Assembly: GCA_965202585.1 (NCBI GenBank) | Contig: OZ241831.1 | Coordinates: forward strand, 50,158,001-50,222,000 | DNA: 64,000 bases | Direction of reading: 5' to 3' | DNA from: Thalia democratica | Taxonomy: Eukaryota | Shown: positions 34,215 through 64,000 of the stretch, one piece after another | Layout: each line of letters opens with the position of its first letter | Numbering within the stretch: the stretch's first letter is position 1 | The notes under the pieces: model-generated | Told to the model about the DNA's origin: nothing | Databases searched by the model: none | Seen by the model: only the letters and a program-made list of their open reading frames with translations | Translations under genes and position numbers: made by a program

Positions 34215-35377
34215 ATGAACGTCAAAGACAAACTAGAAGCTCTTCTCCTAATCGAGAGAACGGACACAATCCAAAACATCTTCAGATCCTCCACGAACGA
34301 GGCATAGAAGAACTGTACGAAACAATTGCAAAGTACTTCAAATTGGTGCTGAAAATTCACTCCGAAGTGCGAGCCGGCTCCGGAACGATGAAATTTTACC
34401 TGAAGAAGCTGATGCGCGAAGTCATGTCTTCCATGCTCGATTATTGCAACAAGATAAAATCTGTGAGGAGTTTCAGCGGGGTCGGCGTTACGTTCGGTTT
34501 CGAGCGGTTCCGAGTCAGCTTCGACTTCAGCGGCTGCAAGACTCTCATCTCGTCAGAAGATCTTCAAAAGATGCACGAGCTCACGAACAGCGTCGACTCA
34601 GTTGAAATGAGGTTCACCGAAGGGAGTTTCTTCGACAAAACGGCGTCCGGATTGGTTGAAATAGAGCGCGAGTGGGGCAGGCAACGGGCGTTCAAGAGGT
34701 ACCTCGAGTCGCTGCTGATCCGGTGCGAGAAACTGAACAACGTCAGAAAGCACCACGAAAAGTACATTGCCGAGCAGAAGAATTTCAAGCAGTTTTGCCG
34801 CGGCGTGGCGCTGAAGGAAGAGCACAATCGAATGCAGAAAGTCGCTTGGGAGTAGGTTTACAGGAAGGAGGGGGAAGCCAAGCTGGAGAACGTGTTCATC
34901 GGGTACTTTTCGTTTTTTCAAAAAATTTTCTTTGTGCAGAGCAGCTTGAGAGAAGAAGACAGGATCGCGCCCAATGGTTATTCTGTGAAGATCAACAACG
35001 AGTTGGACGCGGCTTCGGAAGCGTTTAAAAAGTTCAGTTCGGACAACGAGTTCTTTTTGAACAACGCCGCAATCAAGCCGAACTTTTTAGTGGACGAACT
35101 GCTAGGTTATGAGATAAACGCCGGCAACGTACGCAACTTTTTCAACCACCGTGTGGCGCACGTGAGCAACTATTCACCCGACTACGAGTTCGACGTTCGA
35201 AACATGGTCCGTTTCGTCAACGGGGAGAGCGGAATGAAGTCCATGGTGCCTTAGGTGCAGCGGGTGAGCAGGAAGCTCACTGCAGGTAATAACTGCAAAA
35301 TTTGCTTGAGTGAAGCAGAACGGGAGTTGAACTTGCTGAACAGCAAATACGACTTTGAAAACATTAAGTTGAATTAA
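34215..35377 (+). pseudogene. Progenitor orphan gene, second copy with the same three lesions
   Basis: Identical to 2877-4039 at offset +31338. Confidence 0.8.
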
Positions 35378-35474
35378 AACAATAACTTTCAAAGTTTTTT
35401 TTATTTAATTAATAACTAAATTTCATCAATGATAAGCTAAGTAAGTATTTAGATTTTTGCAATAAGAACTTATC

Positions 35475-36586
35475 ATGCGCCAAGGTGGCCAAGTGCGCCA
35501 AGTCGCATTGTCTATTGATTTTATGTTGCTATAGAAATTCATTAGAACTCATAAGAAATCAATGCGTTTCGACACTGTTTCGAGGTCGTATGTTCATCGT
35601 TTTCATAAACGCCTCTTGTTTTCTTATCGAAGTAGCTATGCCGAAGCTAGTATATATACGCGTCAGTTCGGTTGGAAGTGTGAATTTGTGTGCAAAATTC
35701 CACAGAAAGAGAGCTCATATATTCGAAAAGAAGAGAATTATGCAAATTTTCGGACACAATTTTTGAATGATTTTGAGTCTACACCTGAAAGAGTTAGTGA
35801 AATCGACTGCGCAGAAACGAGTTTCACCGAAGGGAGTTTCTTCGACAAAGCGGCGTCCGGATTGGTTGAAATAGAGCGGGAGTGGGGCAGGCAACGGGCG
35901 TTCAAGAGGTACCTCGAGTCGCTGCTGATCCAGTGCGAGAAACTGAACAACGTCAGAAAGCACCACGAAAAGTACATCGCCGAGCAAAAGAATTTCAAGC
36001 AACTTTGCCGCGGCGTGGCGCTGAAGGAAGAGCACAATCGAATGCAGAAAGTCGCTTGGGAGTGGGTTTACAGGAAGGAGGGGAAGCCAAGCTGGAGAAC
36101 GTGTTCATCGGGTACTTTTCGTTTTTTCGAAAAATTTTCTTCGTGCTGAGCAGCTTGAGAGAAGAAGACAGGATCGCGCCAAATGGTTATTCTGTGAAGA
36201 TCAACAACGAGTTAGACGCGGCTTCGGAAGCGTTTAAAAAGTTCAGTTCGGACAACGAGTTCTTTTTAAACAACGCCGCCATCAAGCCGAACTTTTTAGT
36301 GGACGAACTGCTAGGTTATGAGATAAACGCCGGCAACGTACGCAACTTTTTCAACCACCGTGTGGCGAACGTGAGCAACTATTCGCCCGACTACGAGTTC
36401 GACGTTCGAAACATGGTCCGTTTCGTCAACGGGGAGAGCGGAATGAAGTCCATGGTGCCTGAGGTTCAGCGGGTGAGCAGGAAGATCGCTGCAGGTAACA
36501 ACTGCAAAATTTGCTTGAGTGAAGCAGAACGAGAGTTGAATTTGCTGAACAACAAATATGATTTTGAAAACATTAAGTTGAATTAA
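35475..36586 (+). pseudogene. Array unit 1, frameshifted (1,209-bp type)
   Basis: Same three indels as 4137-5248. Confidence 0.75.
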
Positions 36587-36683
36587 AACAATAACTTTCA
36601 AAGTTTTTTTTATTTAATTAATAACTAAATTTCATCAATGATAAGCTAAGTAAGTATTTAGATTTTTGCAATAAGAACTTATC

Positions 36684-37805
36684 ATGCGCCAAGGTGGCCA
36701 AGTGCGCCAAGTCGCCAAGTCGCATTGTCTATTGATTTTATGTTGCTATAGAAATTCATTAGAACTCATAAGAAATCAATGCGTTTCGACACTGTTTCGA
36801 GGTCGTATGTTCATCGTTTTCATAAACGCCTCTTGTTTTCTTATCGAAGTAGCTATGCCGAAGCTAGTATATATACGCGTCAGTTCGGTTGGAAGTGTGA
36901 ATTTATGTGCAAAAAGTCCAGAGAAAGAGAGCTCATATATTCGAAAAGAAGAGAATTATGCAAATTTTCGGACACAATTTTTTAATGATTTTGAGTCTAC
37001 ACCTGAAAGAGTTAGTGAAATCGACTGCGCAGAAACGAGTTTCACCAAAGGGAGTTTCTTTGACAAAGCGGCGTCCGGATTGGTTGAAATAGAGCGGGAG
37101 TGGGGCAGACGACGGGCGTTCAAGAGGTACCTCGAGTCGCTGCTGATCCAGTGCGAGGAACTGAGCAACGTCAGAAAGCACCACGAAAAGTACATTGCCG
37201 AGCAGAAAAAGTTCAAGCAATTTTGCCACCATATGGCGCTGAAGGAAGAGCACAATCGAATGCAGAAAGTCGCTTGGGAGTGGGTTTACAGGAAGGAGGG
37301 GGGAGCCAAGCTGGAGAACGTGTTCATCGGGTACTTTTCGTTTTTTCGAAAAATTTTCTTCGTGCAGAGCAGCTTGAGAGAAGAAGAAAGGATCGCGCCA
37401 AATGGTTGTTCTGTGCAGATCAACAACGAGTTGGACGCGGCTTCGGAAGCGTTTAAAAAGTTCAGTTCGGACAACGAGTTCTTTTTGAACAACGCCGCAA
37501 TCAAGCCGAACTTTTTAGTGGACGAACTGCTAGGTTATGAGATAAACGCCGGCAACGTACGCAACTTTTTCAACCACCGTGTGGCGTACGTGAGCAACTA
37601 TTCACCCGACTACGAGTTCGACGTTCGAAACATGGTCCGTTTCGTCAACGGGGAGAGCGGAATGAAGTCCATGGTGCCTTAGGTGCAGCGGGTGAGCAGG
37701 AAGCTCACTGCAGGTAATAACTGCAAAATTTGCTTGAGTGAAGCAGAACGGGAGTTGAACTTGCTGAACAGCAAATACGACTTTGAAAACATTAAGTTGA
37801 ATTAA
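36684..37805 (+). pseudogene. Array unit 2, premature TAG (ORF 36684-37682, 332 aa)
   Basis: Carries the same GAG to TAG stop as the progenitor gene. Confidence 0.75.
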
Positions 37806-37902
37806 AACAATAACTTTCAAAGTTTTTTTTATTTAATTAATAACTAAATTTCATCAATGATAAGCTAAGTAAGTATTTAGATTTTTGCAATAAGAACTTA
37901 TC

Positions 37903-39014
37903 ATGCGCCAAGGTGGCCAAGTGCGCCAAGTCGCATTGTCTATTGATTTTATGTTGCTATAGAAATTCATTAGAACTCATAAGAAATCAATGCGTTTCGA
38001 CACTGTTTCGAGGTCGTATGTTCATCGTTTTCATAAACGCCTCTTGTTTTCTTATCGAAGTAGCTATGCCGAAGCTAGTATATATACGCGTCAGTTCGGT
38101 TGGAAGTGTGAATTTGTGTGCAAAATTCCACAGAAAGAGAGCTCATATATTCGAAAAGAAGAGAATTATGCAAATTTTCGGACACAATTTTTGAATGATT
38201 TTGAGTCTACACCTGAAAGAGTTAGTGAAATCGACTGCGCAGAAACGAGTTTCACCGAAGGGAGTTTCTTCGACAAAGCGGCGTCCGGATTGGTTGAAAT
38301 AGAGCGGGAGTGGGGCAGGCAACGGGCGTTCAAGAGGTACCTCGAGTCGCTGCTGATCCAGTGCGAGAAACTGAACAACGTCAGAAAGCACCACGAAAAG
38401 TACATCGCCGAGCAAAAGAATTTCAAGCAACTTTGCCGCGGCGTGGCGCTGAAGGAAGAGCACAATCGAATGCAGAAAGTCGCTTGGGAGTGGGTTTACA
38501 GGAAGGAGGGGAAGCCAAGCTGGAGAACGTGTTCATCGGGTACTTTTCGTTTTTTCGAAAAATTTTCTTCGTGCTGAGCAGCTTGAGAGAAGAAGACAGG
38601 ATCGCGCCAAATGGTTATTCTGTGAAGATCAACAACGAGTTAGACGCGGCTTCGGAAGCGTTTAAAAAGTTCAGTTCGGACAACGAGTTCTTTTTAAACA
38701 ACGCCGCCATCAAGCCGAACTTTTTAGTGGACGAACTGCTAGGTTATGAGATAAACGCCGGCAACGTACGCAACTTTTTCAACCACCGTGTGGCGAACGT
38801 GAGCAACTATTCGCCCGACTACGAGTTCGACGTTCGAAACATGGTCCGTTTCGTCAACGGGGAGAGCGGAATGAAGTCCATGGTGCCTGAGGTTCAGCGG
38901 GTGAGCAGGAAGATCGCTGCAGGTAACAACTGCAAAATTTGCTTGAGTGAAGCAGAACGAGAGTTGAATTTGCTGAACAACAAATATGATTTTGAAAACA
39001 TTAAGTTGAATTAA
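37903..39014 (+). pseudogene. Array unit 3, frameshifted (1,209-bp type)
   Basis: Duplicate of unit 1. Confidence 0.75.
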
Positions 39015-39111
39015 AACAATAACTTTCAAAGTTTTTTTTATTTAATTAATAACTAAATTTCATCAATGATAAGCTAAGTAAGTATTTAGATTTTTGCAAT
39101 AAGAACTTATC

Positions 39112-40233
39112 ATGCGCCAAGGTGGCCAAGTGCGCCAAGTCGCCAAGTCGCATTGTCTATTGATTTTATGTTGCTATAGAAATTCATTAGAACTCATAAG
39201 AAATCAATGCGTTTCGACACTGTTTCGAGGTCGTATGTTCATCGTTTTCATAAACGCCTCTTGTTTTCTTATCGAAGTAGCTATGCCGAAGCTAGTATAT
39301 ATACGCGTCAGTTCGGTTGGAAGTGTGAATTTATGTGCAAAAAGTCCAGAGAAAGAGAGCTCATATATTCGAAAAGAAGAGAATTATGCAAATTTTCGGA
39401 CACAATTTTTTAATGATTTTGAGTCTACACCTGAAAGAGTTAGTGAAATCGACTGCGCAGAAACGAGTTTCACCAAAGGGAGTTTCTTTGACAAAGCGGC
39501 GTCCGGATTGGTTGAAATAGAGCGGGAGTGGGGCAGACGACGGGCGTTCAAGAGGTACCTCGAGTCGCTGCTGATCCAGTGCGAGGAACTGAGCAACGTC
39601 AGAAAGCACCACGAAAAGTACATTGCCGAGCAGAAAAAGTTCAAGCAATTTTGCCACCATATGGCGCTGAAGGAAGAGCACAATCGAATGCAGAAAGTCG
39701 CTTGGGAGTGGGTTTACAGGAAGGAGGGGGGAGCCAAGCTGGAGAACGTGTTCATCGGGTACTTTTCGTTTTTTCGAAAAATTTTCTTCGTGCAGAGCAG
39801 CTTGAGAGAAGAAGAAAGGATCGCGCCAAATGGTTGTTCTGTGCAGATCAACAACGAGTTGGACGCGGCTTCGGAAGCGTTTAAAAAGTTCAGTTCGGAC
39901 AACGAGTTCTTTTTAAACAACGCCGCCATCAAGCCGAACTTTTTAGTGGACGAACTGCTGGGTTATGAGATAAACGCCGGCAACGTACGCAACTTTTTCA
40001 ACCACCGTGTGGCGTACGTGAGCAACTATTCACCCGACTACGAGTTCGACGTTCGAAACATGGTCCGTTTCGTCAACGGGGAGAGCAGAATGAAGTCCAT
40101 GGTGCCTGAGGTGCAGCGGGTGAGCAGGAAGCTCGCTGCAGGTAACAACTGCAAAATTTGCTTGAGTGAAGCAGAACGAGAGTTGAATTTGCTGAACAAC
40201 AAATACGACTTTAAAAACATTAAGTTGAATTAA
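39112..40233 (+). CDS. Array unit 4, intact 373-aa orphan ORF (true start may be Met58)
   Basis: ATG-to-TAA open frame; codons 114-373 homologous to the progenitor gene. Confidence 0.6.
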   Translation: MRQGGQVRQVAKSHCLLILCCYRNSLELIRNQCVSTLFRGRMFIVFINASCFLIEVAMPKLVYIRVSSVGSVNLCAKSPEKESSYIRKEENYANFRTQFFNDFESTPERVSEIDCAETSFTKGSFFDKAASGLVEIEREWGRRRAFKRYLESLLIQCEELSNVRKHHEKYIAEQKKFKQFCHHMALKEEHNRMQKVAWEWVYRKEGGAKLENVFIGYFSFFRKIFFVQSSLREEERIAPNGCSVQINNELDAASEAFKKFSSDNEFFLNNAAIKPNFLVDELLGYEINAGNVRNFFNHRVAYVSNYSPDYEFDVRNMVRFVNGESRMKSMVPEVQRVSRKLAAGNNCKICLSEAERELNLLNNKYDFKNIKLN

Positions 40234-40330
40234 AGCAATAACTTTCAAAGTTTTTTTTATTTAATTAATAACTAAATTTCATCAATGATAAGCTAAGTAA
40301 GTATTTAGATTTTTGCAATAAGAACTTATC

Positions 40331-41452
40331 ATGCGCCAAGGTGGCCAAGTGCGCCAAGTCGCCAAGTCGCATTGTCTATTGATTTTATGTTGCTATAGAA
40401 ATTCATTAGAACTCATAAGAAATCAATGCGTTTCGACACTGTTTCGAGGTCGTATGTTCATCGTTTTCATAAACGCCTCTTGTTTTCTTATCGAAGTAGC
40501 TATGCCGAAGCTCGTATATATACGCGTCAGTTCGGTTGGAAGTGTGAATTTGTGTGCAAAAAGTCCAGAGAAAGAGAGCTCATATATTCGAAAAGAAGAG
40601 AATTATGCAAATTTTCGGACACAATTTTTTAATGATTTTGAGTCTACACCTGAAAGAGTTAGTGAAATCGACTTGGTTGAAACGAGTTTCACCAAAGGGA
40701 GTTTCTTCGACAAAGCGGCGTCCGGATTGGTTGAAATAGAGCGGGAGTGGGGCAGGCAACGGGCGTTCAAGAGGTACCTCGAGTCGCTGCTGGTGCAGTG
40801 CGAGAAACTGAACAACGTCAGAAAGCACCACGAAAAGTACATCGCCGAGCAGAAGAATTTCAAGCAGTTTTGCCGCGGCGTGGCGCTGAAGGAAGAACAC
40901 AATCGAATGCAGAAAGTCGCTTGGGAGTGGGTTTGCAGGAAGGAGGGGGAAGCCAAGCTGGAGAACGTGTTCATCGGGTACTTTTCGTTTTTTCGAAAAA
41001 TTTTCTTCGTGCTGAGCAGCTTGAGAGAAGAAGACAGGATCGCGCCAAATGGTTATTCTGTGAAGATCAACAACGAGTTAGACGCGGCTTCGGAAGCGTT
41101 TAAAAAGTTCAGTTCGGACAACGAGTTCTTTTTAAACAACGCCGCCATCAAGCCGAACTTTTTAGTGGACGAACTGCTAGGTTATGAGATAAACGCCGGC
41201 AACGTACGCAACTTTTTCAACCACCGTGTGGCGAACGTGAGCAACTATTCGCCCGACTACGAGTTCGACGTTCGAAACATGGTCCGTTTCGTCAACGGGG
41301 AGAGCGGAATGAAGTCCATGGTGCCTGAGGTTCAGCGGGTGAGCAGGAAGATCGCTGCAGGTAACAACTGCAAAATTTGCTTGAGTGAAGCAGAACGAGA
41401 GTTGAATTTGCTGAACAACAAATATGATTTTGAAAACATTAAGTTGAATTAA
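40331..41452 (+). CDS. Array unit 5, intact 373-aa orphan ORF
   Basis: Open frame; IDLVET variant. Confidence 0.6.
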   Translation: MRQGGQVRQVAKSHCLLILCCYRNSLELIRNQCVSTLFRGRMFIVFINASCFLIEVAMPKLVYIRVSSVGSVNLCAKSPEKESSYIRKEENYANFRTQFFNDFESTPERVSEIDLVETSFTKGSFFDKAASGLVEIEREWGRQRAFKRYLESLLVQCEKLNNVRKHHEKYIAEQKNFKQFCRGVALKEEHNRMQKVAWEWVCRKEGEAKLENVFIGYFSFFRKIFFVLSSLREEDRIAPNGYSVKINNELDAASEAFKKFSSDNEFFLNNAAIKPNFLVDELLGYEINAGNVRNFFNHRVANVSNYSPDYEFDVRNMVRFVNGESGMKSMVPEVQRVSRKIAAGNNCKICLSEAERELNLLNNKYDFENIKLN

Positions 41453-41549
41453 AACAATAACTTTCAAAGTTTTTTTTATTTAATTAATAACTAAATTTCA
41501 TCAATGATAAGCTAAGTAAGTATTTAGATTTTTGCAATAAGAACTTATC

Positions 41550-42671
41550 ATGCGCCAAGGTGGCCAAGTGCGCCAAGTCGCCAAGTCGCATTGTCTATTG
41601 ATTTTATGTTGCTATAGAAATTCATTAGAACTCATAAGAAATCAATGCGTTTCGACACTGTTTCGAGGTCGTATGTTCATCGTTTTCATAAACGCCTCTT
41701 GTTTTCTTATCGAAGTAGCTATGCCGAAGCTAGTATATATACGCGTCAGTTCGGTTGGAAGTGTGAATTTATGTGCAAAAAGTCCAGAGAAAGAGAGCTC
41801 ATATATTCGAAAAGAAGAGAATTATGCAAATTTTCGGACACAATTTTTTAATGATTTTGAGTCTACACCTGAAAGAGTTAGTGAAATCGACTGCGCAGAA
41901 ACGAGTTTCACCAAAGGGAGTTTCTTTGACAAAGCGGCGTCCGGATTGGTTGAAATAGAGCGGGAGTGGGGCAGACGACGGGCGTTCAAGAGGTACCTCG
42001 AGTCGCTGCTGATCCAGTGCGAGGAACTGAGCAACGTCAGAAAGCACCACGAAAAGTACATTGCCGAGCAGAAAAAGTTCAAGCAATTTTGCCACCATAT
42101 GGCGCTGAAGGAAGAGCACAATCGAATGCAGAAAGTCGCTTGGGAGTGGGTTTACAGGAAGGAGGGGGGAGCCAAGCTGGAGAACGTGTTCATCGGGTAT
42201 TTTTCGTTTTTCCGAAAAATTTTCTTCGTGCAGAGCAGCTTGAGAGAAGAAGAAAGGATCGCGCCAAATGGTTGTTCTGTGAAGATCAACAACGAGTTGG
42301 ACGCGGCTTCGGAAGCGTTTAAAAAGTTCAGTTCGGACAACGAGTTCTTTTTAAACAACGCCGCCATCAAGCCGAACTTTTTAGTGGACGAACTGCTGGG
42401 TTATGAGATAAACGCCGGCAACGTACGCAACTTTTTCAACCACCGTGTGGCGTACGTGAGCAACTATTCACCCGACTACGAGTTCGACGTTCGAAACATG
42501 GTCCGTTTCGTCAACGGGGAGAGCAGAATGAAGTCCATGGTGCCTGAGGTGCAGCGGGTGAGCAGGAAGCTCGCTGCAGGTAACAACTGCAAAATTTGCT
42601 TGAGTGAAGCAGAACGAGAGTTGAATTTGCTGAACAACAAATACGACTTTAAAAACATTAAGTTGAATTAA
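41550..42671 (+). CDS. Array unit 6, intact 373-aa orphan ORF
   Basis: Open frame; near-copy of unit 4. Confidence 0.6.
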   Translation: MRQGGQVRQVAKSHCLLILCCYRNSLELIRNQCVSTLFRGRMFIVFINASCFLIEVAMPKLVYIRVSSVGSVNLCAKSPEKESSYIRKEENYANFRTQFFNDFESTPERVSEIDCAETSFTKGSFFDKAASGLVEIEREWGRRRAFKRYLESLLIQCEELSNVRKHHEKYIAEQKKFKQFCHHMALKEEHNRMQKVAWEWVYRKEGGAKLENVFIGYFSFFRKIFFVQSSLREEERIAPNGCSVKINNELDAASEAFKKFSSDNEFFLNNAAIKPNFLVDELLGYEINAGNVRNFFNHRVAYVSNYSPDYEFDVRNMVRFVNGESRMKSMVPEVQRVSRKLAAGNNCKICLSEAERELNLLNNKYDFKNIKLN

Positions 42672-42768
42672 AGCAATAACTTTCAAAGTTTTTTTTATTT
42701 AATTAATAACTAAATTTCATCAATGATAAGCTAAGTAAGTATTTAGATTTTTGCAATAAGAACTTATC

Positions 42769-43890
42769 ATGCGCCAAGGTGGCCAAGTGCGCCAAGTCGC
42801 CAAGTCGCATTGTCTATTGATTTTATGTTGCTATAGAAATTCATTAGAACTCATAAGAAATCAATGCGTTTCGACACTGTTTCGAGGTCGTATGTTCATC
42901 GTTTTCATAAACGCCTCTTGTTTTCTTATCGAAGTAGCTATGCCGAAGCTCGTATATATACGCGTCAGTTCGGTTGGAAGTGTGAATTTGTGTGCAAAAA
43001 GTCCAGAGAAAGAGAGCTCATATATTCGAAAAGAAGAGAATTATGCAAATTTTCGGACACAATTTTTTAATGATTTTGAGTCTACACCTGAAAGAGTTAG
43101 TGAAATCGACTTGGTTGAAACGAGTTTCACCAAAGGGAGTTTCTTCGACAAAGCGGCGTCCGGATTGGTTGAAATAGAGCGGGAGTGGGGCAGGCAACGG
43201 GCGTTCAAGAGGTACCTCGAGTCGCTGCTGGTGCAGTGCGAGAAACTGAACAACGTCAGAAAGCACCACGAAAAGTACATCGCCGAGCAGAAGAATTTCA
43301 AGCAGTTTTGCCGCGGCGTGGCGCTGAAGGAAGAACACAATCGAATGCAGAAAGTCGCTTGGGAGTGGGTTTGCAGGAAGGAGGGGGAAGCCAAGCTGGA
43401 GAACGTGTTCATCGGGTACTTTTCGTTTTTTCGAAAAATTTTCTTCGTGCTGAGCAGCTTGAGAGAAGAAGACAGGATCGCGCCAAATGGTTATTCTGTG
43501 AAGATCAACAACGAGTTAGACGCGGCTTCGGAAGCGTTTAAAAAGTTCAGTTCGGACAACGAGTTCTTTTTGAACAACGCCGCCATCAAGCCGAACTTTT
43601 TAGTTGACGAGCTGCTTGGTTATGAGATAAACGCCGGCAACGTACGCAACTTTTTCAACCACCGTGTGGCGAATGTGAGCAACTATTCACCCGACTACGA
43701 GTTCGACGTTCGAAACATGGCCCGTTTCGTCAACGGGGAGAGCGGAATGAAGTCCATGGTGCCTGAGGTGCAGCGGGTGAGCAGGAAGCTCGCTGCAGGT
43801 AACAACTGCAAAATTTGCTTGAGTGAAGCAGAACGAGAGTTGAATTTGCTGAACAGCAAATACGACTTTGAAAACATTAAGTTGAATTAA
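42769..43890 (+). CDS. Array unit 7, intact 373-aa orphan ORF
   Basis: Open frame. Confidence 0.6.
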   Translation: MRQGGQVRQVAKSHCLLILCCYRNSLELIRNQCVSTLFRGRMFIVFINASCFLIEVAMPKLVYIRVSSVGSVNLCAKSPEKESSYIRKEENYANFRTQFFNDFESTPERVSEIDLVETSFTKGSFFDKAASGLVEIEREWGRQRAFKRYLESLLVQCEKLNNVRKHHEKYIAEQKNFKQFCRGVALKEEHNRMQKVAWEWVCRKEGEAKLENVFIGYFSFFRKIFFVLSSLREEDRIAPNGYSVKINNELDAASEAFKKFSSDNEFFLNNAAIKPNFLVDELLGYEINAGNVRNFFNHRVANVSNYSPDYEFDVRNMARFVNGESGMKSMVPEVQRVSRKLAAGNNCKICLSEAERELNLLNSKYDFENIKLN

Positions 43891-43988
43891 AACAATAACT
43901 TTCAAAGTTTTTTTTTATTTAATTAATAACTAAATTTCATCAATGATAAACAAAGTAAGTATTTAGATTTTTGCAATAAGAACTTATC

Positions 43989-45110: not shown

Positions 45111-45208
45111 AACAATAACTTTCAAAGTTTTTTTTTATTTAATTAATAACTAAATTTCATCAATGATAAACAAAGTAAGTATTTAGATTTTTGCAATAAG
45201 AACTTATC

Positions 45209-46330: not shown

Positions 46331-46428
46331 AACAATAACTTTCAAAGTTTTTTTTTATTTAATTAATAACTAAATTTCATCAATGATAAACAAAGTAAGT
46401 ATTTAGATTTTTGCAATAAGAACTTATC

Positions 46429-51203: not shown

Positions 51204-51300
51204 AACAATAACTTTCAAAGTTTTTTTTATTTAATTAATAACTAAATTTCATCAATGATAAGCTAAGTAAGTATTTAGATTTTTGCAATAAGAACTTATC

Positions 51301-52421: not shown

Positions 52422-52518
52422 AACAATAACTTTCAAAGTTTTTTTTATTTAATTAATAACTAAATTTCATCAATGATAAGCTAAGTAAGTATTTAGATTT
52501 TTGCAATAAGAACTTATC

Positions 52519-53640: not shown

Positions 53641-53737
53641 AACAATAACTTTCAAAGTTTTTTTTATTTAATTAATAACTAAATTTCATCAATGATAAGC
53701 TAAGTAAGTATTTCGATTTTTGCAATAAGAACTTATC

Positions 53738-54859: not shown

Positions 54860-54956
54860 AACAATAACTTTCAAAGTTTTTTTTATTTAATTAATAACTA
54901 AATTTCATCAATGATAAGCTAAGTAAGTATTTAGATTTTTGCAATAAGAACTTATC

Positions 54957-56078
54957 ATGCGCCAAGGTGGCCAAGTGCGCCAAGTCGCCAAGTCGCATTG
55001 TCTATTGATTTTATGTTGCTATAGAAATTCATTAGAACTCATAAGAAATCAATGCGTTTCGACACTGTTTCGAGGTCGTATGTTCATCGTTTTCATAAAC
55101 GCCTCTTGTTTTCTTATCGAAGTAGCTATGCCGAAGCTCGTATATATACGCGTCAGTTCGGTTGGAAGTGTGAATTTGTGTGCAAAAAGTCCAGAGAAAG
55201 AGAGCTCATATATTCGAAAAGAAGAGAATTATGCAAATTTTCGGACACAATTTTTTAATGATTTTGAGTCTACACCTGAAAGAGTTAGTGAAATCGACTG
55301 CGCAGAAACGAGTTTCACCGAAGGGAGTTTTTTCGACAAAGCGGCGTCCGGATTGGTTGAAATAGAGCGGGAATGGGGCAGGCGACGGGCGTTCAAGAGG
55401 TACCTCGAGTCGCTGCTGGTCCGGTGCGAGAATCTGAACAACGTCAGAAAGCACCACGAAAAGTACATTGCCGAGCAGAAGAATTTCAAGCAATTTTGCC
55501 GCGGCGTGGCGCTGAAGGGAGAGCACAATCGAATGCAGAAAGTCGCTTGGGAGTGGGTTTACAGGAAGGAGGGGGAAGCCAAGCTGGAGAACGTGTTCAT
55601 CGGGTACTTTTCGTTTTTTCGAAAAATTTTCTTCGTGCAGAGCAGCTTGAGAGAAGAAGACAGGATCGCGCTCGATGGTTATTCTGTGCAGATCAACAAC
55701 GAGTTAGACGCGGCTTCGGAAGCGTTCAAAAAGTTCAGTTCGGACAACGAGTTCTTTCTAAACAACGCCGCCATCAAGCCGAACTTTTCAGTGGACGAAC
55801 TGCTAGGTTATGAGATAAACGCCAGCAACGTACGCAACTTTTTCAACCACCGTGTGGCGCACGCGAGCAACTATTCACCCGACTACGAGTTCGACGTTCG
55901 AAACATGGTCCGTTTCGTCAACGGGGAGAGCAGAATGAAGTTCATGGTGCCTGAGGTGCAGCGGGTGAGCAGGAAGCTCGCTGCAGGTAACCACTGCAAA
56001 ATTTGCTTGAGTGAAGCAGAACGAGAGTTGAACTTACTGAACAACAAATACGACTTTGAAAACATTAAGTTGAATTAA
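54957..56078 (+). CDS. Array unit 17, intact 373-aa orphan ORF
   Basis: Open frame; same protein as unit 15. Confidence 0.6.
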   Translation: MRQGGQVRQVAKSHCLLILCCYRNSLELIRNQCVSTLFRGRMFIVFINASCFLIEVAMPKLVYIRVSSVGSVNLCAKSPEKESSYIRKEENYANFRTQFFNDFESTPERVSEIDCAETSFTEGSFFDKAASGLVEIEREWGRRRAFKRYLESLLVRCENLNNVRKHHEKYIAEQKNFKQFCRGVALKGEHNRMQKVAWEWVYRKEGEAKLENVFIGYFSFFRKIFFVQSSLREEDRIALDGYSVQINNELDAASEAFKKFSSDNEFFLNNAAIKPNFSVDELLGYEINASNVRNFFNHRVAHASNYSPDYEFDVRNMVRFVNGESRMKFMVPEVQRVSRKLAAGNHCKICLSEAERELNLLNNKYDFENIKLN

Positions 56079-56175
56079 AACAATAACTTTCAAAGTTTTT
56101 TTTATTTAATTAATAACTAAATTTCATCAATGATAAGCTAAGTAAGTATTTAGATTTTTGCAATAAGAACTTATC

Positions 56176-57297
56176 ATGCGCCAAGGTGGCCAAGTGCGCC
56201 AAGTCGCCAAGTCGCATTGTCTATTGATTTTATGTTGCTATAGAAATTCATTAGAACTCATAAGAAATCAATGCGTTTCGACACTGTTTCGAGGTCGTAT
56301 GTTCATCGTTTTCATAAACGCCTCTTGTTTTCTTATCGAAGTAGCTATGCCGAAGCTCGTATATATACGCGTCAGTTCGGTTGGAAGTGTGAATTTGTGT
56401 GCAAAAAGTCCAGAGAAAGAGAGCTCATATATTCGAAAAGAAGAGAATTATGCAAATTTTCGGACACAATTTTTTAATGATTTTGAGTCTACACCTGAAA
56501 GAGTTAGTGAAATCGACTGCGCAGAAACGAGTTTCACCGAAGGGAGTTTTTTCGACAAAGCGGCGTCCGGATTGGTTGAAATAGAGCGGGAATGGGGCAG
56601 GCGACGGGCGTTCAAGAGGTACCTCGAGTCGCTGCTGATCCAGTGCGAGAAACTGAACAACGTCAGAAAGCACCACGAAAAGTACATTGCCGAGCAGAAG
56701 AATTTCAAGCAATTTTGCCGCGGCGTGGCGCTGAAGGGAGAGCACAATCGAATGCAGAAAGTCGCTTGGGAGTGGGTTTACAGGAAGGAGGGGGAAGCCA
56801 AGCTGGAGAACGTGTTCATCGGGTACTTTTCGTTTTTTCGAAAAATTTTCTTCGTGCAGAGCAGCTTGAGAGAAGAAGACAGGATCGCGCTCGATGGTTA
56901 TTCTGTGCAGATCAACAACGAGTTAGACGCGGCTTCGGAAGCGTTCAAAAAGTTCAGTTCGGACAACGAGTTCTTTCTAAACAACGCCGCCATCAAGCCG
57001 AACTTTTCAGTGGACGAACTGCTAGGTTATGAGATAAACGCCAGCAACGTACGCAACTTTTTCAACCACCGTGTGGCGCACGTGAGCAACTATTCACCCG
57101 ACTACGAGTTCGACGTTCGAAACATGGTCCGTTTCGTCAACGGGGAGAGCAGAATGAAGTCCATGGTGCCTGAGGTGCAGCGGGTGAGCAGGAAGCTCAC
57201 TGCAGGTAACCACTGCAAAATTTGCTTGAGTGAAGCAGAACAGGAGTTGAACTTGCTGAACAGCAAATACGACTTTGAAAACATTAAGTTGAATTAA
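56176..57297 (+). CDS. Array unit 18, intact 373-aa orphan ORF
   Basis: Open frame; mosaic of unit 15-17 and unit 19 variants. Confidence 0.6.
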   Translation: MRQGGQVRQVAKSHCLLILCCYRNSLELIRNQCVSTLFRGRMFIVFINASCFLIEVAMPKLVYIRVSSVGSVNLCAKSPEKESSYIRKEENYANFRTQFFNDFESTPERVSEIDCAETSFTEGSFFDKAASGLVEIEREWGRRRAFKRYLESLLIQCEKLNNVRKHHEKYIAEQKNFKQFCRGVALKGEHNRMQKVAWEWVYRKEGEAKLENVFIGYFSFFRKIFFVQSSLREEDRIALDGYSVQINNELDAASEAFKKFSSDNEFFLNNAAIKPNFSVDELLGYEINASNVRNFFNHRVAHVSNYSPDYEFDVRNMVRFVNGESRMKSMVPEVQRVSRKLTAGNHCKICLSEAEQELNLLNSKYDFENIKLN

Positions 57298-57394
57298 AAC
57301 AATAACTTTCAAAGTTTTTTTTATTTAATTAATAACTAAATTTCATCAATGATAAGCTAAGTAAGTATTTAGATTTTTGCAATAAGAACTTATC

Positions 57395-58516
57395 ATGCGC
57401 CAAGGTGGCCAAGTGCGCCAAGTCGCCAAGTCGCATTGTCTATTGATTTTATGTTGCTATAGAAATTCATTAGAACTCATAAGAAATCAATGCGTTTCGA
57501 CACTGTTTCGAGGTCGTATGTTCATCGTTTTCATAAACGCCTCTTGTTTTCTTATCGAAGTAGCTATGCCGAAGCTAGTATATATACGCGTCAGTTCGGT
57601 TGGAAGTGTGAATTTGTGTGCAAAAAGTCCAGAGAAAGAGAGCTCATATATTCGAAAAGAAGAGAATTATGCAAATTTTCGGACACAATTTTTTAATGAT
57701 TTTGAGTCTACACCTGAAAGAGTTAGTGAAATCGACTGCGCAGAAACGAGTTTCACCGAAGGGAGTTTCTTCGACAAAGCGGCGTCCGGATTGGTTGAAA
57801 TAGAGCGGGAGTGGGGCAGGCGACGGGCGTTCAAGAGGTACCTCGAGTCGCTGCTGATCCGGTGCGAGAAACTGAACAACGTCAGAAAGCACCACGAGAA
57901 GTACATCGCCGAGCAGAAAAAGTTCAAGCAGTTTTGCCGCGGCGTGGCGCTGAAGAAAGAGCACAACCGAATGCAGAAAGTCGCTTGGGAGTGGGTTTAC
58001 AGGAAGGAGGGGGAAGCAAAGTTGGAAAACGTGTTCATCGGGTACTTTTCGTTTTTTCGAAAAATTTTCTTCGTGCAGAGCAGCTTGAGAGAAGAAGACA
58101 GGATCGCGCCCAATGGTTATTCTGTGCAGATCAACAACGAGTTGGACGCGGCTTCGGAAGCGTTCAAAAAGTTCAGTTCGGACAACGAGTTCTTTTTGAA
58201 CAACGCCGCTATCAAGCCGAACTTTTTAGTGGACGAGCTGCTGGGTTATGAGATAAATGCCGGCAACGTACGCAACTTTTTCAACCACCGTGTGGCGAAC
58301 GTGAGCAACTATTCACCCGACTACGAGTTCGACGTTCGAAACATGGTCCGTTTCGTCAACGGGGAGAGCAGAATGAAGTCCATGGTGCCTGAGGTGCAGC
58401 GGGTGAGCAGGAAGCTCACTGCAGGTAACCACTGCAAAATTTGCTTGAGTGAAGCAGAACAGGAGTTGAACTTGCTGAACAGCAAATACGACTTTGAAAA
58501 CATTAAGTTGAATTAA
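57395..58516 (+). CDS. Array unit 19, intact 373-aa orphan ORF
   Basis: Open frame; many synonymous variants. Confidence 0.6.
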   Translation: MRQGGQVRQVAKSHCLLILCCYRNSLELIRNQCVSTLFRGRMFIVFINASCFLIEVAMPKLVYIRVSSVGSVNLCAKSPEKESSYIRKEENYANFRTQFFNDFESTPERVSEIDCAETSFTEGSFFDKAASGLVEIEREWGRRRAFKRYLESLLIRCEKLNNVRKHHEKYIAEQKKFKQFCRGVALKKEHNRMQKVAWEWVYRKEGEAKLENVFIGYFSFFRKIFFVQSSLREEDRIAPNGYSVQINNELDAASEAFKKFSSDNEFFLNNAAIKPNFLVDELLGYEINAGNVRNFFNHRVANVSNYSPDYEFDVRNMVRFVNGESRMKSMVPEVQRVSRKLTAGNHCKICLSEAEQELNLLNSKYDFENIKLN

Positions 58517-58613
58517 AACAATAACTTTCAAAGTTTTTTTTATTTAATTAATAACTAAATTTCATCAATGATAAGCTAAGTAAGTATTTAGATTTTTGCA
58601 ATAAGAACTTATC

Positions 58614-59729
58614 ATGCGCCAAGGTGGCCAAGTGCGCCAAGTCGCCAAGTCGCATTGTCTATTGATTTTATGTTGCTATAGAAATTCATTAGAACTCATA
58701 AGAAATCAATGCGTTTCGACACTGTTTCGAGGTCGTATGTTCATCGTTTTCATAAACGCCTCTTGTTTTCTTATCGAAGTAGCTATGCCGAAGCTAGTAT
58801 ATATACGCGTCAGTTCGGTTGGAAGTGTGAATTTGTGTGCAAAAAGTCCAGAGAAAGAGAGCTCATATATTCGAAAAGAAGAGAATTATGCAAATTTTCG
58901 GACACAATTTTTTAATGATTTTGAGTCTACACCTGAAAGAGTTAGTGAAATCGACTGCGCAGAAACGAGTTTCACCGAAGGGAGTTTCTTCGACAAAGCG
59001 GCGTCCGGATTGGTTGAAATAGAGCTGGAGTGGGGCAGGCAACGGGCGTTCAAGAGGTACCTCGAGTCGCTGCTGATCCGGTGCGAGAAACTGAGCAACG
59101 TCAGAAAGCACCACGAAAAGTACATCGCCGAGCAGAAAATGTTCAAGCATATTTGCCGCGGCGTGGCGCTGAAGGAAGAGCACAATCGAATGCGGAAAGT
59201 CGCTTGGGAGTGGGTTTACAGGAAGGAGGGGGAAGCCAAGCTGGAGAACGTGTTCATTGGGTACTTTTCGTTTTTTCAAAAAACTTTCTTCGTGCAGAGC
59301 AGCTTGAGAGAAGAAGACAGGATCGCGCCAAATGGTTATTCTGCGAAGATCAACAACGAGTTGGACGCGGCTTCGGAAGCGTTTAAAAAGTTCAGTTCGG
59401 ACAACGAGTTCTTTTTAAACAACGCCGCCATCAAGCCGAACTTTTTAGTGGTCGAGCTGCTAGGTTATGAGATAAACGCCGGCAGCAACTTTTTCAACCA
59501 CCGTGTGGCGAACGTGAGCAACTATTCACCCGACTACGAGTTCGACGTTCGAAACATGGTCCGTTTCGTCAACGGGGAGAGCAGAATGAAATTCATGGTG
59601 CCTGAGGTGCAGCGGGTGAGCAGGAAGCTCGCTGCAGGTAACAACTGCAAAATTTGCTTGAGTGAAGCAGAACGAGAGTTGAACTTGCTGAACAGCAAAT
59701 ACGACTTTGAAAACATTAAGTTGAATTAA
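58614..59729 (+). CDS. Array unit 20, intact 371-aa orphan ORF (6-bp in-frame deletion)
   Basis: Open frame; NAGSNFF instead of NAGNVRNFF. Confidence 0.6.
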   Translation: MRQGGQVRQVAKSHCLLILCCYRNSLELIRNQCVSTLFRGRMFIVFINASCFLIEVAMPKLVYIRVSSVGSVNLCAKSPEKESSYIRKEENYANFRTQFFNDFESTPERVSEIDCAETSFTEGSFFDKAASGLVEIELEWGRQRAFKRYLESLLIRCEKLSNVRKHHEKYIAEQKMFKHICRGVALKEEHNRMRKVAWEWVYRKEGEAKLENVFIGYFSFFQKTFFVQSSLREEDRIAPNGYSAKINNELDAASEAFKKFSSDNEFFLNNAAIKPNFLVVELLGYEINAGSNFFNHRVANVSNYSPDYEFDVRNMVRFVNGESRMKFMVPEVQRVSRKLAAGNNCKICLSEAERELNLLNSKYDFENIKLN

Positions 59730-59826
59730 AACAATAACTTTCAAAGTTTTTTTTATTTAATTAATAACTAAATTTCATCAATGATAAGCTAAGTAAGTAT
59801 TTAGATTTTTGCAATAAGAACTTATC

Positions 59827-60948
59827 ATGCGCCAAGGTGGCCAAGTGCGCCAAGTCGCCAAGTCGCATTGTCTATTGATTTTATGTTGCTATAGAAATTC
59901 ATTAGAACTCATAAGAAATCAATGCGTTTCGACACTGTTTCGAGGTCGTATGTTCATCGTTTTCATAAACGCCTCTTGTTTTCTTATCGAAGTAGCTATG
60001 CCGAAGCTAGTATATATACGCGTCAGTTCGGTTGGAAGTGTGAATTTGTGTGCAAAAAGTCCAGAGAAAGAGAGCTCATATATTCGAAAAGAAGAGAATT
60101 ATGCAAATTTTCGGACACAATTTTTTAATGATTTTGAGTCTACACCTGAAAGAGTTAGTGAAATCGACTGCGCAGAAACGAGTTTCACCGAAGGGAGTTT
60201 CTTCGACAAAGCGGCGTCCGGATTGGTTGAAATAGAGCGGGAGTGGGGCAGGCGACGGGCGTTCAAGAGGTACCTCGAGTCGCTGCTGATCCAGTGCGAG
60301 AATCTGAACAACGTCAGAAAGCACCACGAGAAGTACATCGCCGAGCAGAAGAATTTCAAGCAATTTTGCCGCGGCGTGGCGCTGAAGGAAGAGCACAATC
60401 GAATGCAGAAAGTCGCTTGGGAGTGGGTTTACAGGAAGGAGGGGGAAGCCAAGCTGGAAAACGTGTTCATCGGGTATTTTTCGTTTTTTCGAAAAATTTT
60501 CTTCGTGCAGAGCAGCTTGAGAGAAGAAGACAGGATCGCGCCAAATGGTTGTTCTGTGCAGATCAACAACGAGTTGGACGCGGCTTCGGAAGCGTTTAAA
60601 AAGTTCAGTTCGGACAACGAGTTCTTTTTAAACAACGCCGCCATCAAGCCGAACTTTTTAGTGGACGAACTGCTAGGTTATGAGATAAACGCCGGCAACG
60701 TACGCAACTTTTTCAACCACCGTGTGGCGAACGTGAGCAACTATTCACCCGACTACGAGTTCGACGTTCGAAACATGGTCCGTTTCGTCAACGGGGAGAG
60801 CAGAATGAAATTCATGGTGCCTGAGGTGCAGCGGGTGAGCAGGAAGCTCACTGCAGGTAACCACTGCAAAATTTGCTTGAGTGAAGCAGAACGGGAGTTG
60901 AACTTACTGAACAGCAAATACGACTTTGAAAACATTAAGTTGAATTAA
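59827..60948 (+). CDS. Array unit 21, intact 373-aa orphan ORF
   Basis: Open frame. Confidence 0.6.
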   Translation: MRQGGQVRQVAKSHCLLILCCYRNSLELIRNQCVSTLFRGRMFIVFINASCFLIEVAMPKLVYIRVSSVGSVNLCAKSPEKESSYIRKEENYANFRTQFFNDFESTPERVSEIDCAETSFTEGSFFDKAASGLVEIEREWGRRRAFKRYLESLLIQCENLNNVRKHHEKYIAEQKNFKQFCRGVALKEEHNRMQKVAWEWVYRKEGEAKLENVFIGYFSFFRKIFFVQSSLREEDRIAPNGCSVQINNELDAASEAFKKFSSDNEFFLNNAAIKPNFLVDELLGYEINAGNVRNFFNHRVANVSNYSPDYEFDVRNMVRFVNGESRMKFMVPEVQRVSRKLTAGNHCKICLSEAERELNLLNSKYDFENIKLN

Positions 60949-61045
60949 AACAATAACTTTCAAAGTTTTTTTTATTTAATTAATAACTAAATTTCATCAA
61001 TGATAAGCTAAGTAAGTATTTAGATTTTTGCAATAAGAACTTATC

Positions 61046-61738
61046 ATGCGCCAAGGTGGCCAAGTGCGCCAAGTCGCATTGTCTATTGATTTTATGTTGC
61101 TATAGAAATTCATTAGAACTCATAAGAAATCAATGCGTTTCGACACTGTTTCGAGGTCGTATGTTCATCGTTTTCATAAACGCCTCTTGTTTTCTTATCG
61201 AAGTAGCTATGCCGAAGCTAGTATATATACGCGTCAGTTCGGTTGGAAGTGTGAATTTGTGTGCAAAATGTCAGAGAAAGAGAGCTCATATATTCGAAAA
61301 GAAGAGAATTATGCAAATTTTCGGACACAATTTTTTAATGATTTTGAGTCTACACCTGAAAGAGTTAGTGAAATCGACTGCGCAGAAACGAGTTTCACCA
61401 AAGGGAGTTTCTTCGACAAAGCGGCGTCCGGATTGGTTGAAATAGAGCGGGAATGGGGCAGGCGACGGGCGTTCAAAAGGTACCTCGAGTCGCTGCTGAT
61501 CCGGTGCGAGGAACTGAACAACGTCAGAAAGCACCACGAAAAGTACATCGCCGAGCAGAAGAATTTCAAGCAATTTTGCCGCGGCGTGGCGCTGAAGGAA
61601 GAGCACAATCGAATGCAGAAAGTCGCTTGGGAGTGGGTTTGAGGAAGGAGGGGGAAGCAAAGTTGGAAAACGTGTTCAGAACGAAAGTTGAATTTGCTGA
61701 ACAACAAATACGACTTTGAAAACATTAAGTTGAATTAA
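61046..61738 (+). pseudogene. Array unit 22 (790-bp unit), 5' frameshifts, TGA stop and ~420-bp internal deletion
   Basis: Junction AACGTGTTCA|GAACGAAAGTTG at ~61678. Confidence 0.8.
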
Positions 61739-61835
61739 AACAATAACTTTCAAAGTTTTTTTTATTTAATTAACAACTAAATTTCATCAATGATAAGCTA
61801 AGTAAGTATTTAGATTTTTGCAATAAGAACTTATC

Positions 61836-62957
61836 ATGCGCCAAGGTGGCCAAGTGCGCAAAGTCGCCAAGTCGCATTGTCTATTGATTTTATGTTGCTA
61901 TAGAAATTCATTAGAACTCATAAGAAATCAATGCGTTTCGACACTGTTTCGAAGTCGTATGTTCATCGTTTTCATAAACGCCTCTTGTTTTCTTATCGAA
62001 GTAGCTATGCCGAAGCTCGTATATATACGCGTCAGTTCGGTTGGAAGTGTGAATTTGTGTGCAAAAAGTCCAGAGAAAGAGAGCTCATATATTCGAAAAG
62101 AAGAGAATTATGCAAATTTTCGGACACAATTTTTTAATGATTTTGAGTCTACACCTGAAAGAGTTAGTGAAATCGACTGCGCAGAAACGAGTTTCACCAA
62201 AGGGAGTTTCTTCGACAAAGCGGCGTCCGGATTGGTTGAAATAGAGCGGGAGTGGGGCAGGCGACGGGCGTTCAAGAGGTACCTCGAGTCGCTGCTGATC
62301 CGGTGCGAGAAACTGAACAACGTCAGAAAGCACCACGAAAAGTACATTGCTGAGCAGAAGAATTTCAAGCAATTTTGCCACGGCGTGGCGCTGAAGGAAG
62401 AACACAATCGAATGCAGAAAGTCGCTTGGGAGTGGGTTTACAGGAAGGAGGGGGAAGCCAAGCTGGAGAACGTGTTTATCGGGTATTTTTCGCTTTTTAG
62501 AAAAATTTTCCTCGTGCAGAGCAGCTTGAGAGAAGAAGACAGGATCGCGCTCGATGGTTATTCTGTGCAGATCAACAACGAGTTGGACGCGGCTTCGGAA
62601 GCGTTTAAAAAGTTCAGTTCGGACAACGAGTTCTTTTTAAACGACGCCGCCATCAAGCCGAACTTTTTAGTGGACGAACTGCTGGGTTATGAGATAAACG
62701 CCGGCAACATTTGCAACTTTTTCAACCACCGTGTGGCGAACGTGAGCAACTATTCACCCGACTACGAGTTCGACGTTCGAAACATGGTCCGTTTCGTCAA
62801 CGGGGAGAGCAGAATGAAGTCCATGGTGCCTGAGGTGCAGCGGGTGAGCAGGAAGCTCGCTGCAGGTAACAACTGCAAAATTTGCTTGGATGAAGCAGAA
62901 CAGGAGTTGAACTTACTGAACAGCAAATACGACTTTGAAAACATTAAGTTGAATTAA
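61836..62957 (+). CDS. Array unit 23, intact 373-aa orphan ORF
   Basis: Open frame. Confidence 0.6.
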   Translation: MRQGGQVRKVAKSHCLLILCCYRNSLELIRNQCVSTLFRSRMFIVFINASCFLIEVAMPKLVYIRVSSVGSVNLCAKSPEKESSYIRKEENYANFRTQFFNDFESTPERVSEIDCAETSFTKGSFFDKAASGLVEIEREWGRRRAFKRYLESLLIRCEKLNNVRKHHEKYIAEQKNFKQFCHGVALKEEHNRMQKVAWEWVYRKEGEAKLENVFIGYFSLFRKIFLVQSSLREEDRIALDGYSVQINNELDAASEAFKKFSSDNEFFLNDAAIKPNFLVDELLGYEINAGNICNFFNHRVANVSNYSPDYEFDVRNMVRFVNGESRMKSMVPEVQRVSRKLAAGNNCKICLDEAEQELNLLNSKYDFENIKLN

Positions 62958-63054
62958 AACAACAACTTTCAAAGTTTTTTTTATTTAATTAATAACTAAA
63001 TTTCATCAATGATAAGCTAAGTAAGTATTTAGATTTTTGCAATAAGAACTTATC

Positions 63055-64000
63055 ATGCGCCAAGGTGACAAGTGCGCCAAGTCGCCAAGTCGCATTGTCT
63101 ATTGATTTTATGTTGCTATAGAAATTCATTAGAACTCATAAGAAATCAATGCGTTTCGACACTGTTTCGAGGTCGTATGTTCATCGTTTTCATAAACGCC
63201 TCTTGTTTTCTTATCGAAGTAGCTATGCCGAAGCTCGTATATATACGCGTCAGTTCGGTTGGAAGTGTGAATTTGTGTGCAAAAATTCCAGAGAAAGAGA
63301 GCTCATATATTCGAAAAGAAGAGAATTATGCAAATTTTCGGACACAATTTTTTAATGATTTTGAGTCTACACCTGAAAGAGTTAGTGAAATCGACTGCGC
63401 AGAAACGAGTTTCACCGAAGGGAGTTTCTTCGACAAAGCGGCGTCCGGATTGGTTGAAATAGAGCGCGAGTGGGGCAGGCGACGGGCGTTTAAGAGGTAC
63501 CTCGAGTCGCTGCTGGTTCATTGCGAGAAACTGAACAACGTCAGAAAGCACCACGAAAAGTACATCGCCGAGCAGAAGAATTTCAAGCAGTTTTGCCGCG
63601 GCGTGGCGCTGAAGGAAGAGCACAACCGAATGCAGAAAGTCGCTTGGGAGTGGGTTTACAGGAAGGAGGGGGAAGCCAAGCTGGAGAACGTGTTCATCGG
63701 GTACTTTTTGTTTTTTCGAAAAATTTTCCTCGTGCAGAGCAGCTTGTGAGAAGAAGACAGGATCGCGCCAGATGGTTGTTTTGCGAAGATCAACAACGAG
63801 TTAGACGCGGCTTCGGAAGCGTTTAAAAAGTTCAGTTCCGACAACGAGTTCTTTTTAAACAACGCCGCCATCAAGCCGAACTTTTTAGTGGACGAACTGC
63901 TAGGTTATGAGATAAACTCCGGCAGCATACGCAACTTTTTCAACCACCGTGTGGCGAACGTGAGCAACTATTCACCCGACTACGAGTTCGACGTTCGAAA
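63055..64000 (+). pseudogene. Array unit 24, 5' -1 frameshift and premature TGA (63747-63749), cut by the window end
   Basis: GGTGACAAG instead of GGTGGCCAAG; AGCTTGTGA instead of AGCTTGAGA. Confidence 0.7.

Follow-up and report, generated by a model that had tools for sequence, protein, structure and literature searches.

A tandem array of units joining a gene fragment to a dispersed repeat in Thalia democratica

Several described systems come close to the locus reported here, a head-to-tail array of units that are each mostly occupied by one open reading frame (ORF), in a 64,000-nt stretch of the Thalia democratica genome (GenBank assembly GCA_965202585.1, contig OZ241831.1, positions 50,158,001 to 50,222,000, forward strand). 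This whole stretch is called the window, and positions in it are given on the + strand. In the ampliconic conflict arrays Stellate and Su(Ste), a tandem derivative of a housekeeping-type gene is present as a mixture of intact and degenerate copies. The macrosatellites RS447/USP17-DUB3 (PMC2874809) and D4Z4/DUX4 (PMC5687341) resemble the present array in their kilobase units, their long head-to-tail arrays and the intronless ORF in each unit. The Sdic genes of Drosophila melanogaster are expressed, have a sperm-competition phenotype and occur in about 4-7 copies with introns (PMC7475035).

The frame repeated in the Thalia array joins part of a dispersed repeat, here called X, to the middle of a RING-H2 family gene. 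On balance, we interpret the array as a young macrosatellite of decaying gene fragments, built from a fragment of an ordinary nuclear gene. Its units are most probably non-functional gene fragments.

The array and its chimeric unit

The array was mapped by blastn of a reference unit (39015-40233, 1,219 bp) against the window. The search returned an uninterrupted head-to-tail series from 34593 to 64000, with every unit match on the + strand. The series consists of a partial head copy and 24 units of ~1,219 bp (U01-U24), of which 22 are full length (1,209-1,220 bp), and the units are 94.5-100% identical to the reference. The content of guanine plus cytosine (GC) averages 42-46% across the array, against ~24-26% in the flanks. 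The ORF of the reference unit spans 39112-40233, including the stop, and the next ATG lies at 40331. Frames are open in 14 of the 24 units (U04-U09, U15-U21 and U23; 13 with 373 codons and U20 with 371) and broken in ten (U01-U03, U10-U14, U22 and U24). The initial annotation of this DNA had proposed at least 24 head-to-tail copies of ~1,219 bp, 14 open and ten broken, in a macrosatellite whose unit is mostly ORF (1,122 bp, followed after 97 bp by another ATG); blastn and unit-by-unit translation bear this out. The series is laid out as follows.

34593-35377, + strand: partial head copy, equivalent to unit positions 435-1219
35378-39014, + strand: U01-U03, all broken; U01 equals U03 (8-bp deletion and two 1-bp deletions)
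39015-46330, + strand: U04-U09, each open with 373 codons
46331-52421, + strand: U10-U14, all broken by the same 1-bp loss from a G run (unit position 712)
52422-60948, + strand: U15-U21, all open; U20 has 371 codons through an in-frame 6-bp deletion
60949-61738, + strand: U22, broken: 419 bp are missing internally, and it has the 8-bp deletion and two 1-bp deletions
61739-62957, + strand: U23, open with 373 codons
62958-64000, + strand: U24, frame lost through a 1-bp deletion (unit position 112) and a nonsense change at codon 232

In U02 the frame is interrupted at codon 333 by a nonsense change that is also found in the head copy. U24 is cut by the end of the window, so the array runs on past it. 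The same unit-to-unit junction was found at 96-98% identity in three independent environmental contigs (L002, L009 and L017), and because these contigs share it, the head-to-tail order is no artefact of the assembly. No matches came from scans of the window for Rfam families and tRNAs.

Each unit is made of three kinds of sequence, given here for the reference unit.

39015-39095 and 40219-40233, + strand (96 bp in total): filler, AT-rich, 19% GC
39096-39446, + strand (unit positions 82-432, 351 bp): X part, from dispersed repeat X
39447-40218, + strand (unit positions 433-1204, 772 bp): P part, from the middle of the gene

The filler includes the previous unit's stop codon and the spacer leading up to the ATG; compared with the parent gene and with X, it matched neither. 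The X part comprises a ~325-bp dispersed repeat (unit positions about 70/82 to 407) and 25 bp of local flank, and supplies the ATG at 39112 and ORF codons 1-113. The P part corresponds to positions 827-1597 of environmental contig L001, that is, to codons about 131-387 of the 491-aa relative P0002, which encode a helical middle domain, and it ends ~50 codons short of the RING. With every unit, L001 aligns only over this interval. The frame crosses the junction between X and the gene in phase and then runs through 260 codons of the helical middle domain (codons 114-373). It stops 12 nt beyond the end of gene homology, ending in …FKNIKLN(stop) at a point where, in the relatives, a linker and then the RING follow. 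X-derived codons 1-113 and gene-derived codons 114-373 together make up a chimeric frame.

The units lack parent codons 1-130 and everything past about codon 387, including the RING, and tblastn of P0002 detected no RING-coding DNA anywhere in the window. In an AlphaFold model of the array ORF, residues 1-137 had a predicted local distance difference test (pLDDT) score of ~20, and the P part kept its helical fold (pLDDT 70-90). Sequence searches with the 373-aa ORF gave no RING in Pfam, where the sole match was a sub-threshold MATalpha, two weak and non-significant matches in PHROGs, and matches with E of 0.05 or worse in PDB.

Parent family, repeat X and head copies

The repeated ORF had been described as an orphan, a description that does not survive comparison with contigs of marine metagenomes in several ENA assemblies, among them Tara Oceans and LARK21-1. 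Codons 114-373 fall within a lineage-specific RING-H2 family of the E3 ubiquitin ligase type, whose full-length members P0002, P0003 and P0004 are 66-83% identical to them (83% for the 491-aa P0002); the distant members P0009, P0012 and P0013 are 23-27% identical. P0002, P0003 and P0004 all end in a RING-H2 finger, and the Pfam model zf-RING_2 (PF13639) was found in P0002 (E = 5e-11), P0009 and P0013, with E of about 1e-8 to 1e-11. The full-length architecture is an N-terminal region, a middle domain, a linker and a C-terminal RING, which the units do not match. The middle domain (P0002 residues about 130-390, including a CxxC at 365-368) is present in the array ORF. In the AlphaFold model of P0002, the middle of the protein is a long helical stretch (pLDDT 70-92) and the RING can be superposed on RINGs of the RNF38 type; in a structure search with this parent model only the RING was matched, and the helical middle domain had neither a structural neighbour nor a Pfam family. 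The family is very small in public data and known from marine metagenomes only. Three Logan contigs (L006-L008) had been fetched via cluster member P0025, which is unrelated to the RING family, and were discarded.

Family homologs have features of nuclear genes. Contig L005 carries at 313-799 a 487-bp GT-AG phase-2 intron, located after …ALKR, and P0035-P0037 are exon-1 products that end at this intron site. The intron is absent from the head copy (window 34697-34700), from the array units and from L001, a difference that reflects either intron loss or a retrocopy origin of the window lineage. Coding GC in the relatives is 43-51%, against 22-25% in their introns and intergenic DNA, the same contrast as between the array and its flanks. 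Scans of viral contigs and of Joint Genome Institute (JGI) metagenomes with the family alignment found nothing. The earlier impression of a foreign-looking gene is contradicted by the intron, the shared GC contrast and the lack of viral relatives in these scans, and the RING family consists of ordinary nuclear genes rather than foreign DNA.

The X part has homologies of its own. Copies of X with 75-91% identity lie in unrelated contexts in contigs L010, L011/L012, L013 and L016; they were traced via short metagenomic ORFs matching only codons 47-113, except L016, the one extra copy, which came from a metagenome scan with an X motif. For L011, the X frame is 69% identical as protein and the DNA 87%, no better than neutral divergence predicts. 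Read from the first ATG, the frame is closed in several other X copies, and the array frame through X needs an 8-bp slippage duplication that native X copies lack. Because the X frame is conserved no better than neutral DNA, is closed elsewhere and depends on a slippage duplication, these results indicate that the first 113 codons are a sequence accident rather than an old protein. X carries a TATA-like motif. On L011/L012, a Kelch-repeat ORF (L011:776-1372) follows X (L011:269-596) after ~180 bp in the same orientation; a search with its protein returned no named protein. In L017, a BTB-BACK gene fragment at 2-709 on the - strand is divergent from an X that starts at about 947. X thus adjoins BTB/BACK/Kelch genes, which are Cullin-3 adaptor-like, in two contigs; counted with the RING fragment, it has three ubiquitin-system neighbours, which may be coincidence.

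The array ends fall in X. The right end is seen in L009, where an array unit leads via X into AT-rich DNA. Compared with the array-free contig L010, L009 is ~99% identical from mid-X on, ~13% different in the 5' half of X (judged by eye) and unrelated upstream, and its sequence has the form expected of a crossover inside X. At a different left end, on L017, the BTB-BACK fragment is followed by array homology from the edge of X. Since the array ends within X, copies of X may mediate the rearrangements that bound or move it. At the L009/L010 locus, a second X copy (83% identical; L009:2185-2365, L010:1458-1634) lies ~1,236 bp downstream of the array-ending X, a spacing nearly equal to the array period of 1,219 bp.

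Upstream of the first complete unit lies a remnant of the parent-type gene, and a second such gene heads a short array near the start of the window.

33774-34214, + strand: upstream region of the head gene, conserved with L001:1-436 upstream of the full-length relative; 24% GC
34215-35377, + strand: head copy, a dead, intronless, 3'-truncated parent-type RING-family gene (tblastn and translation)
2877-5880, + strand: second head gene (2877-4039) and short array (units 4040-5248 and 5249-5880)

Window 33774-35362 and L001:1-1597 align with 88.6% identity, over an interval that covers 436 bp upstream and codons 1-387, and the head copy retains the true N-terminal region (family codons 1-130) that the units lack. 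In a tblastn search, residues 1-25 of P0002 fell at 34215-34289 and residues 26-389 at 34289-35368 in a different frame. The lesions of the head copy are a frameshift near 34289 and in-frame stops at 34853-34855 and 35252-35254, and it has no RING. The progenitor had been called dead, which is true of this adjacent head copy, with its one frameshift, two stops and missing RING; intact full-length relatives exist in related genomes.

The short array, which lies outside the array first annotated, holds 2.6 units (3255-5880). It is broken off at unit position 641, against three 14-bp repeats (TATGGGCAATATAA) and AT-rich DNA (5881-5936). A 5.9-kb block at 1-5880, containing a foldback element, a head gene and the first array units, duplicates 31339-37227 at 99.56%. 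Of the 17 mismatches between the two copies, 13, together with a 9-bp indel, fall in the third unit (5249-5880), and elsewhere there are four single-base differences. This clustering shows exchange after the 5.9-kb duplication.

Units have also been exchanged and reshuffled within the long array. Identical or near-identical pairs are U01 and U03, U08 and U09, U11 and U12, and U15 and U17, and U01-U07 alternate two unit types with a two-unit periodicity. Units differ by up to 46 substitutions arranged in structured haplotypes, and these are mosaic: U02 resembles U04 towards its 5' end and the head copy, including the stop codon, towards its 3' end. Unit variants recur in the environmental contigs L002, L009 and L017. 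The lesions trace to few events, each inherited by many units. The 8-bp deletion occurs in U01, U03, U22 and the short-array unit S1, and the 1-bp deletion in the G run in seven window units (U01, U03 and U10-U14) and S1. A frameshifted unit type has therefore been amplified at least seven-fold, so that amplification ignores coding capacity.

Unit diversity, selection and rival explanations

Variation among the units is unevenly spread along their length.

Filler: 6 of 96 sites variable, mean pairwise diversity 1.1%
X: 8 of 351 sites variable, mean pairwise diversity 0.5%
P: 110 of 772 sites variable, mean pairwise diversity 3.9%

P is ~seven times more diverse than X (Fisher p = 2e-11), and the change is abrupt at the X|P junction. 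The initial annotation's description of the copies as diversified holds for the gene-derived P part and fails for the X part. Three candidate causes of the contrast were rejected. CpG shows no depletion and, of 121 variable P sites, just 39 lie in a CpG context, which disfavours CpG decay; AT mutation bias in a GC-rich insert gives just ~1.2-fold by arithmetic from the compositions; and the contrast persists with U22 removed, which argues against misalignment. A three-base change from NVR to NIC in U13 and U23 gives the residues found in the distant relatives P0003 and P0004. Gene conversion into P by paralogs that carry P only would best account for the sharp boundary, with conversion hotspots in X or constraint on X as the alternatives.

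We also examined the ratio of non-synonymous to synonymous change (dN/dS) in the P part. Pairwise among intact units, dN/dS was 0.32 and the proportion of synonymous differences (pS) 0.086; the count over 117 sites was 49 synonymous, 66 non-synonymous and 2 stop, giving dN/dS of 0.43-0.51. Orthologs in the family have dN/dS of 0.29-0.41, and the array consensus compared with the dead head copy 0.22. Because the orthologs and the dead head copy show the same signature, a low dN/dS is not evidence of function here, and it is most simply inherited or imported from functional family members. Among recent, private derived changes, 9 were synonymous, 17 non-synonymous and 1 a stop, a pattern not distinguishable from neutral (p = 0.16-0.27). 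By a hand count, some 120 substitution events were accompanied by ~5 frameshifts and 2 nonsense changes, the latter within the neutral expectation (4.7; P = 0.15). Open units also depart from residues that are invariant in eight aligned family members: U20 has R222Q and I224T, and U05 has L341I.

We propose the following course for a young macrosatellite of gene fragments. A truncated gene copy would have come to adjoin a copy of X, and a single non-homologous tandem duplication that linked X position 432 with gene position 827 would have produced the first repeat. Unequal crossing-over and gene conversion would then have expanded and reshuffled the array; the pattern of exchange is observed, and this mechanism is our reading of it. 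Ectopic exchange between X copies may set or move the array ends. The frames of 14 of the 24 units would be open through the youth and repeated re-amplification of the array, not through a need for the protein.

Several observations weigh against this course. The P part has a synonymous excess over neutral (p = 7e-6 to 2e-4). Fourteen open units of 24 in the window is a high fraction if the 3.9% diversity of P represents new neutral mutation. Among environmental units, those with the internal Met (codon 60) to the stop inside the contig were checked, and all three (P0001, P0015 and P0017) were open over this interval. X and the start-codon region are far more uniform than P, perhaps because a promoter or 5' end is constrained. 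And the chance of a 113-codon stop-free run through AT-rich X, in phase with the gene, is roughly estimated at a few percent.

A rival reading would be a young, dosage-amplified chimeric gene with a promoter supplied by X and a RING-less product that acts as a decoy or dominant negative against the full-length ligases or their partners; such a gene could serve in genetic conflict (drive, host-virus interaction) or be a new structural gene. Precedents are known for truncated duplicates that act on their parents. The open frames in the window and in environmental contigs, the synonymous variation in excess and the uniformity of X and the start region all speak for it, as do the confidently predicted helical fold of the P part, the position of X with its TATA-like motif upstream of the same-orientation Kelch ORF in L011, which fits a promoter-bearing element, and the precedent of chimeric tandem families such as Sdic (PMC7475035). 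Against this stand the equally low dN/dS towards the dead head copy, the amplification of frameshifted units, the altered family-invariant residues in open units, the N-terminal 113 codons, which are not conserved as protein and are predicted to be unstructured, and the ATGs downstream of the TATA-like motif, which are out of frame. We consider a chimeric gene of this kind rather unlikely on the sequences at hand. In a more specific version, the intact units would form a battery of RING-less variants of a fast-evolving, lineage-specific ligase family serving as decoys or dominant negatives in a conflict such as drive or antiviral defence, with P diversified by templated conversion from paralogs and the X promoter and 5' end kept uniform. 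This version seems quite improbable, and an expressed RING-less decoy in any form, the battery included, would again be rather unlikely. The initial annotation had suggested a selfish, antiviral or dosage system, for which we found no support: frameshifted units are amplified equally, and sub-neutral dN/dS is also seen against the dead head copy.

An effect at the RNA level might instead be considered, in which small RNAs from the array, transcribed perhaps from both strands, would silence full-length RING family members in the manner of Su(Ste) or of small interfering RNAs from pseudogenes. A 772-bp stretch with 77-90% identity to family members is present many times over in the array, which lies in a repeat-rich, gene-poor setting beside a foldback-type element. 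But all units found by blastn in the window are in direct orientation, with no inverted copies that could give a hairpin RNA, the sequence has no sign of antisense promoters, and the uniformity lies in X instead of in the targeting P part, so that such a regulator is doubtful at best. X itself could be the selected entity, as a battery of promoters, binding sites or recombination hotspots with the gene fragment as passenger. The counts of variable sites, the pairwise diversities with their abrupt change at the junction, and the coincidence of the array ends with X would all agree with this. Dispersed X copies nevertheless diverge freely (75-91% identity), which speaks against a general constraint, and import into P by conversion from P-only paralogs, of which the NIC state of U13 and U23 may be an example, equally predicts an abrupt boundary; we therefore hold selection on X to be very unlikely. 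A mis-expanded repeat in the assembly is hardly credible. A 12,009-bp duplication at 99.99% identity abuts an upstream gap and leaves local assembly quality open to doubt, but the units differ by too many substitutions (up to 46), in structured haplotypes, and three independent environmental contigs span unit-to-unit junctions. The interpretation as a macrosatellite of decaying gene fragments thus remains the one we favour.

Flanking DNA and comparison with known systems

The DNA beside the array is rich in repeats. A foldback-type element at 31432-33600 lies ~600 bp upstream of the conserved upstream region of the head gene, and is one of three copies in the window (the others at about 94-2271 and 19423-21511). 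Its inverted arms consist of 17/51/103-bp subrepeats with a CACTTTTGCACG… motif; 240 nt are 97% complementary, and ~1.4-1.6 kb separate the arms. The 12,009-bp tandem duplication (10627-21511 and 22636-33521), which abuts an N run at 22436-22635, is either a very recent event or an assembly artefact. A 76-bp tandem repeat is present in 3.1 copies at 7669-7901, in ORF-free DNA of 24% GC, and its consensus contains an inverted repeat (AAAGACGCTC…GAGCGTCTTT). ORFs in the flanks had no Pfam matches. A scan for bacterial-type promoters and terminators is not informative for a eukaryote.

If the favoured interpretation holds, the locus is a clear example of the birth of a macrosatellite from a gene fragment and a dispersed repeat, with both ends and the founding junction visible and the same units present in wild plankton metagenomes. 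It also advises caution: neither "orphan" tandem ORFs nor a sub-neutral dN/dS within an array is evidence of function. If the units were expressed, they would provide a natural example of ligase fragments that are amplified though catalytically dead, and would offer a testable route to the function of an uncharacterised RING family.

The full-length parent relatives end in an RNF38-like RING, as in RNF38/RNF165-type RING-H2 ligases (PF13639); the array ORF has no RING, and the array is not a member of that ligase class. Like Stellate and Su(Ste), the array mixes intact and degenerate copies of a gene derivative, but no opposing antisense or inverted array was seen in the window. RS447 likewise carries an ORF from the ubiquitin system (PMC2874809). 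The units of RS447 and D4Z4 are longer (3.3-4.7 kb, against 1.2 kb here; PMC2874809, PMC5687341), and they encode complete catalytic or DNA-binding proteins, whereas the array encodes a RING-less fragment fused to codons derived from non-coding DNA. Sdic is alike in origin: two unrelated neighbouring sequences were fused, a truncated parent protein gained a new N-terminus from once non-coding or other sequence, and the product was amplified head to tail, with paralogs reshuffled by unequal exchange (PMC7475035). The array differs from Sdic in its at least 24 copies, ten of them broken, and in that the lost part is catalytic and the parent a RING ligase. The array thus fits a known kind, a macrosatellite made of a truncated gene fragment and a repeat, with an origin like that of Sdic and a format like that of RS447/USP17 or D4Z4.

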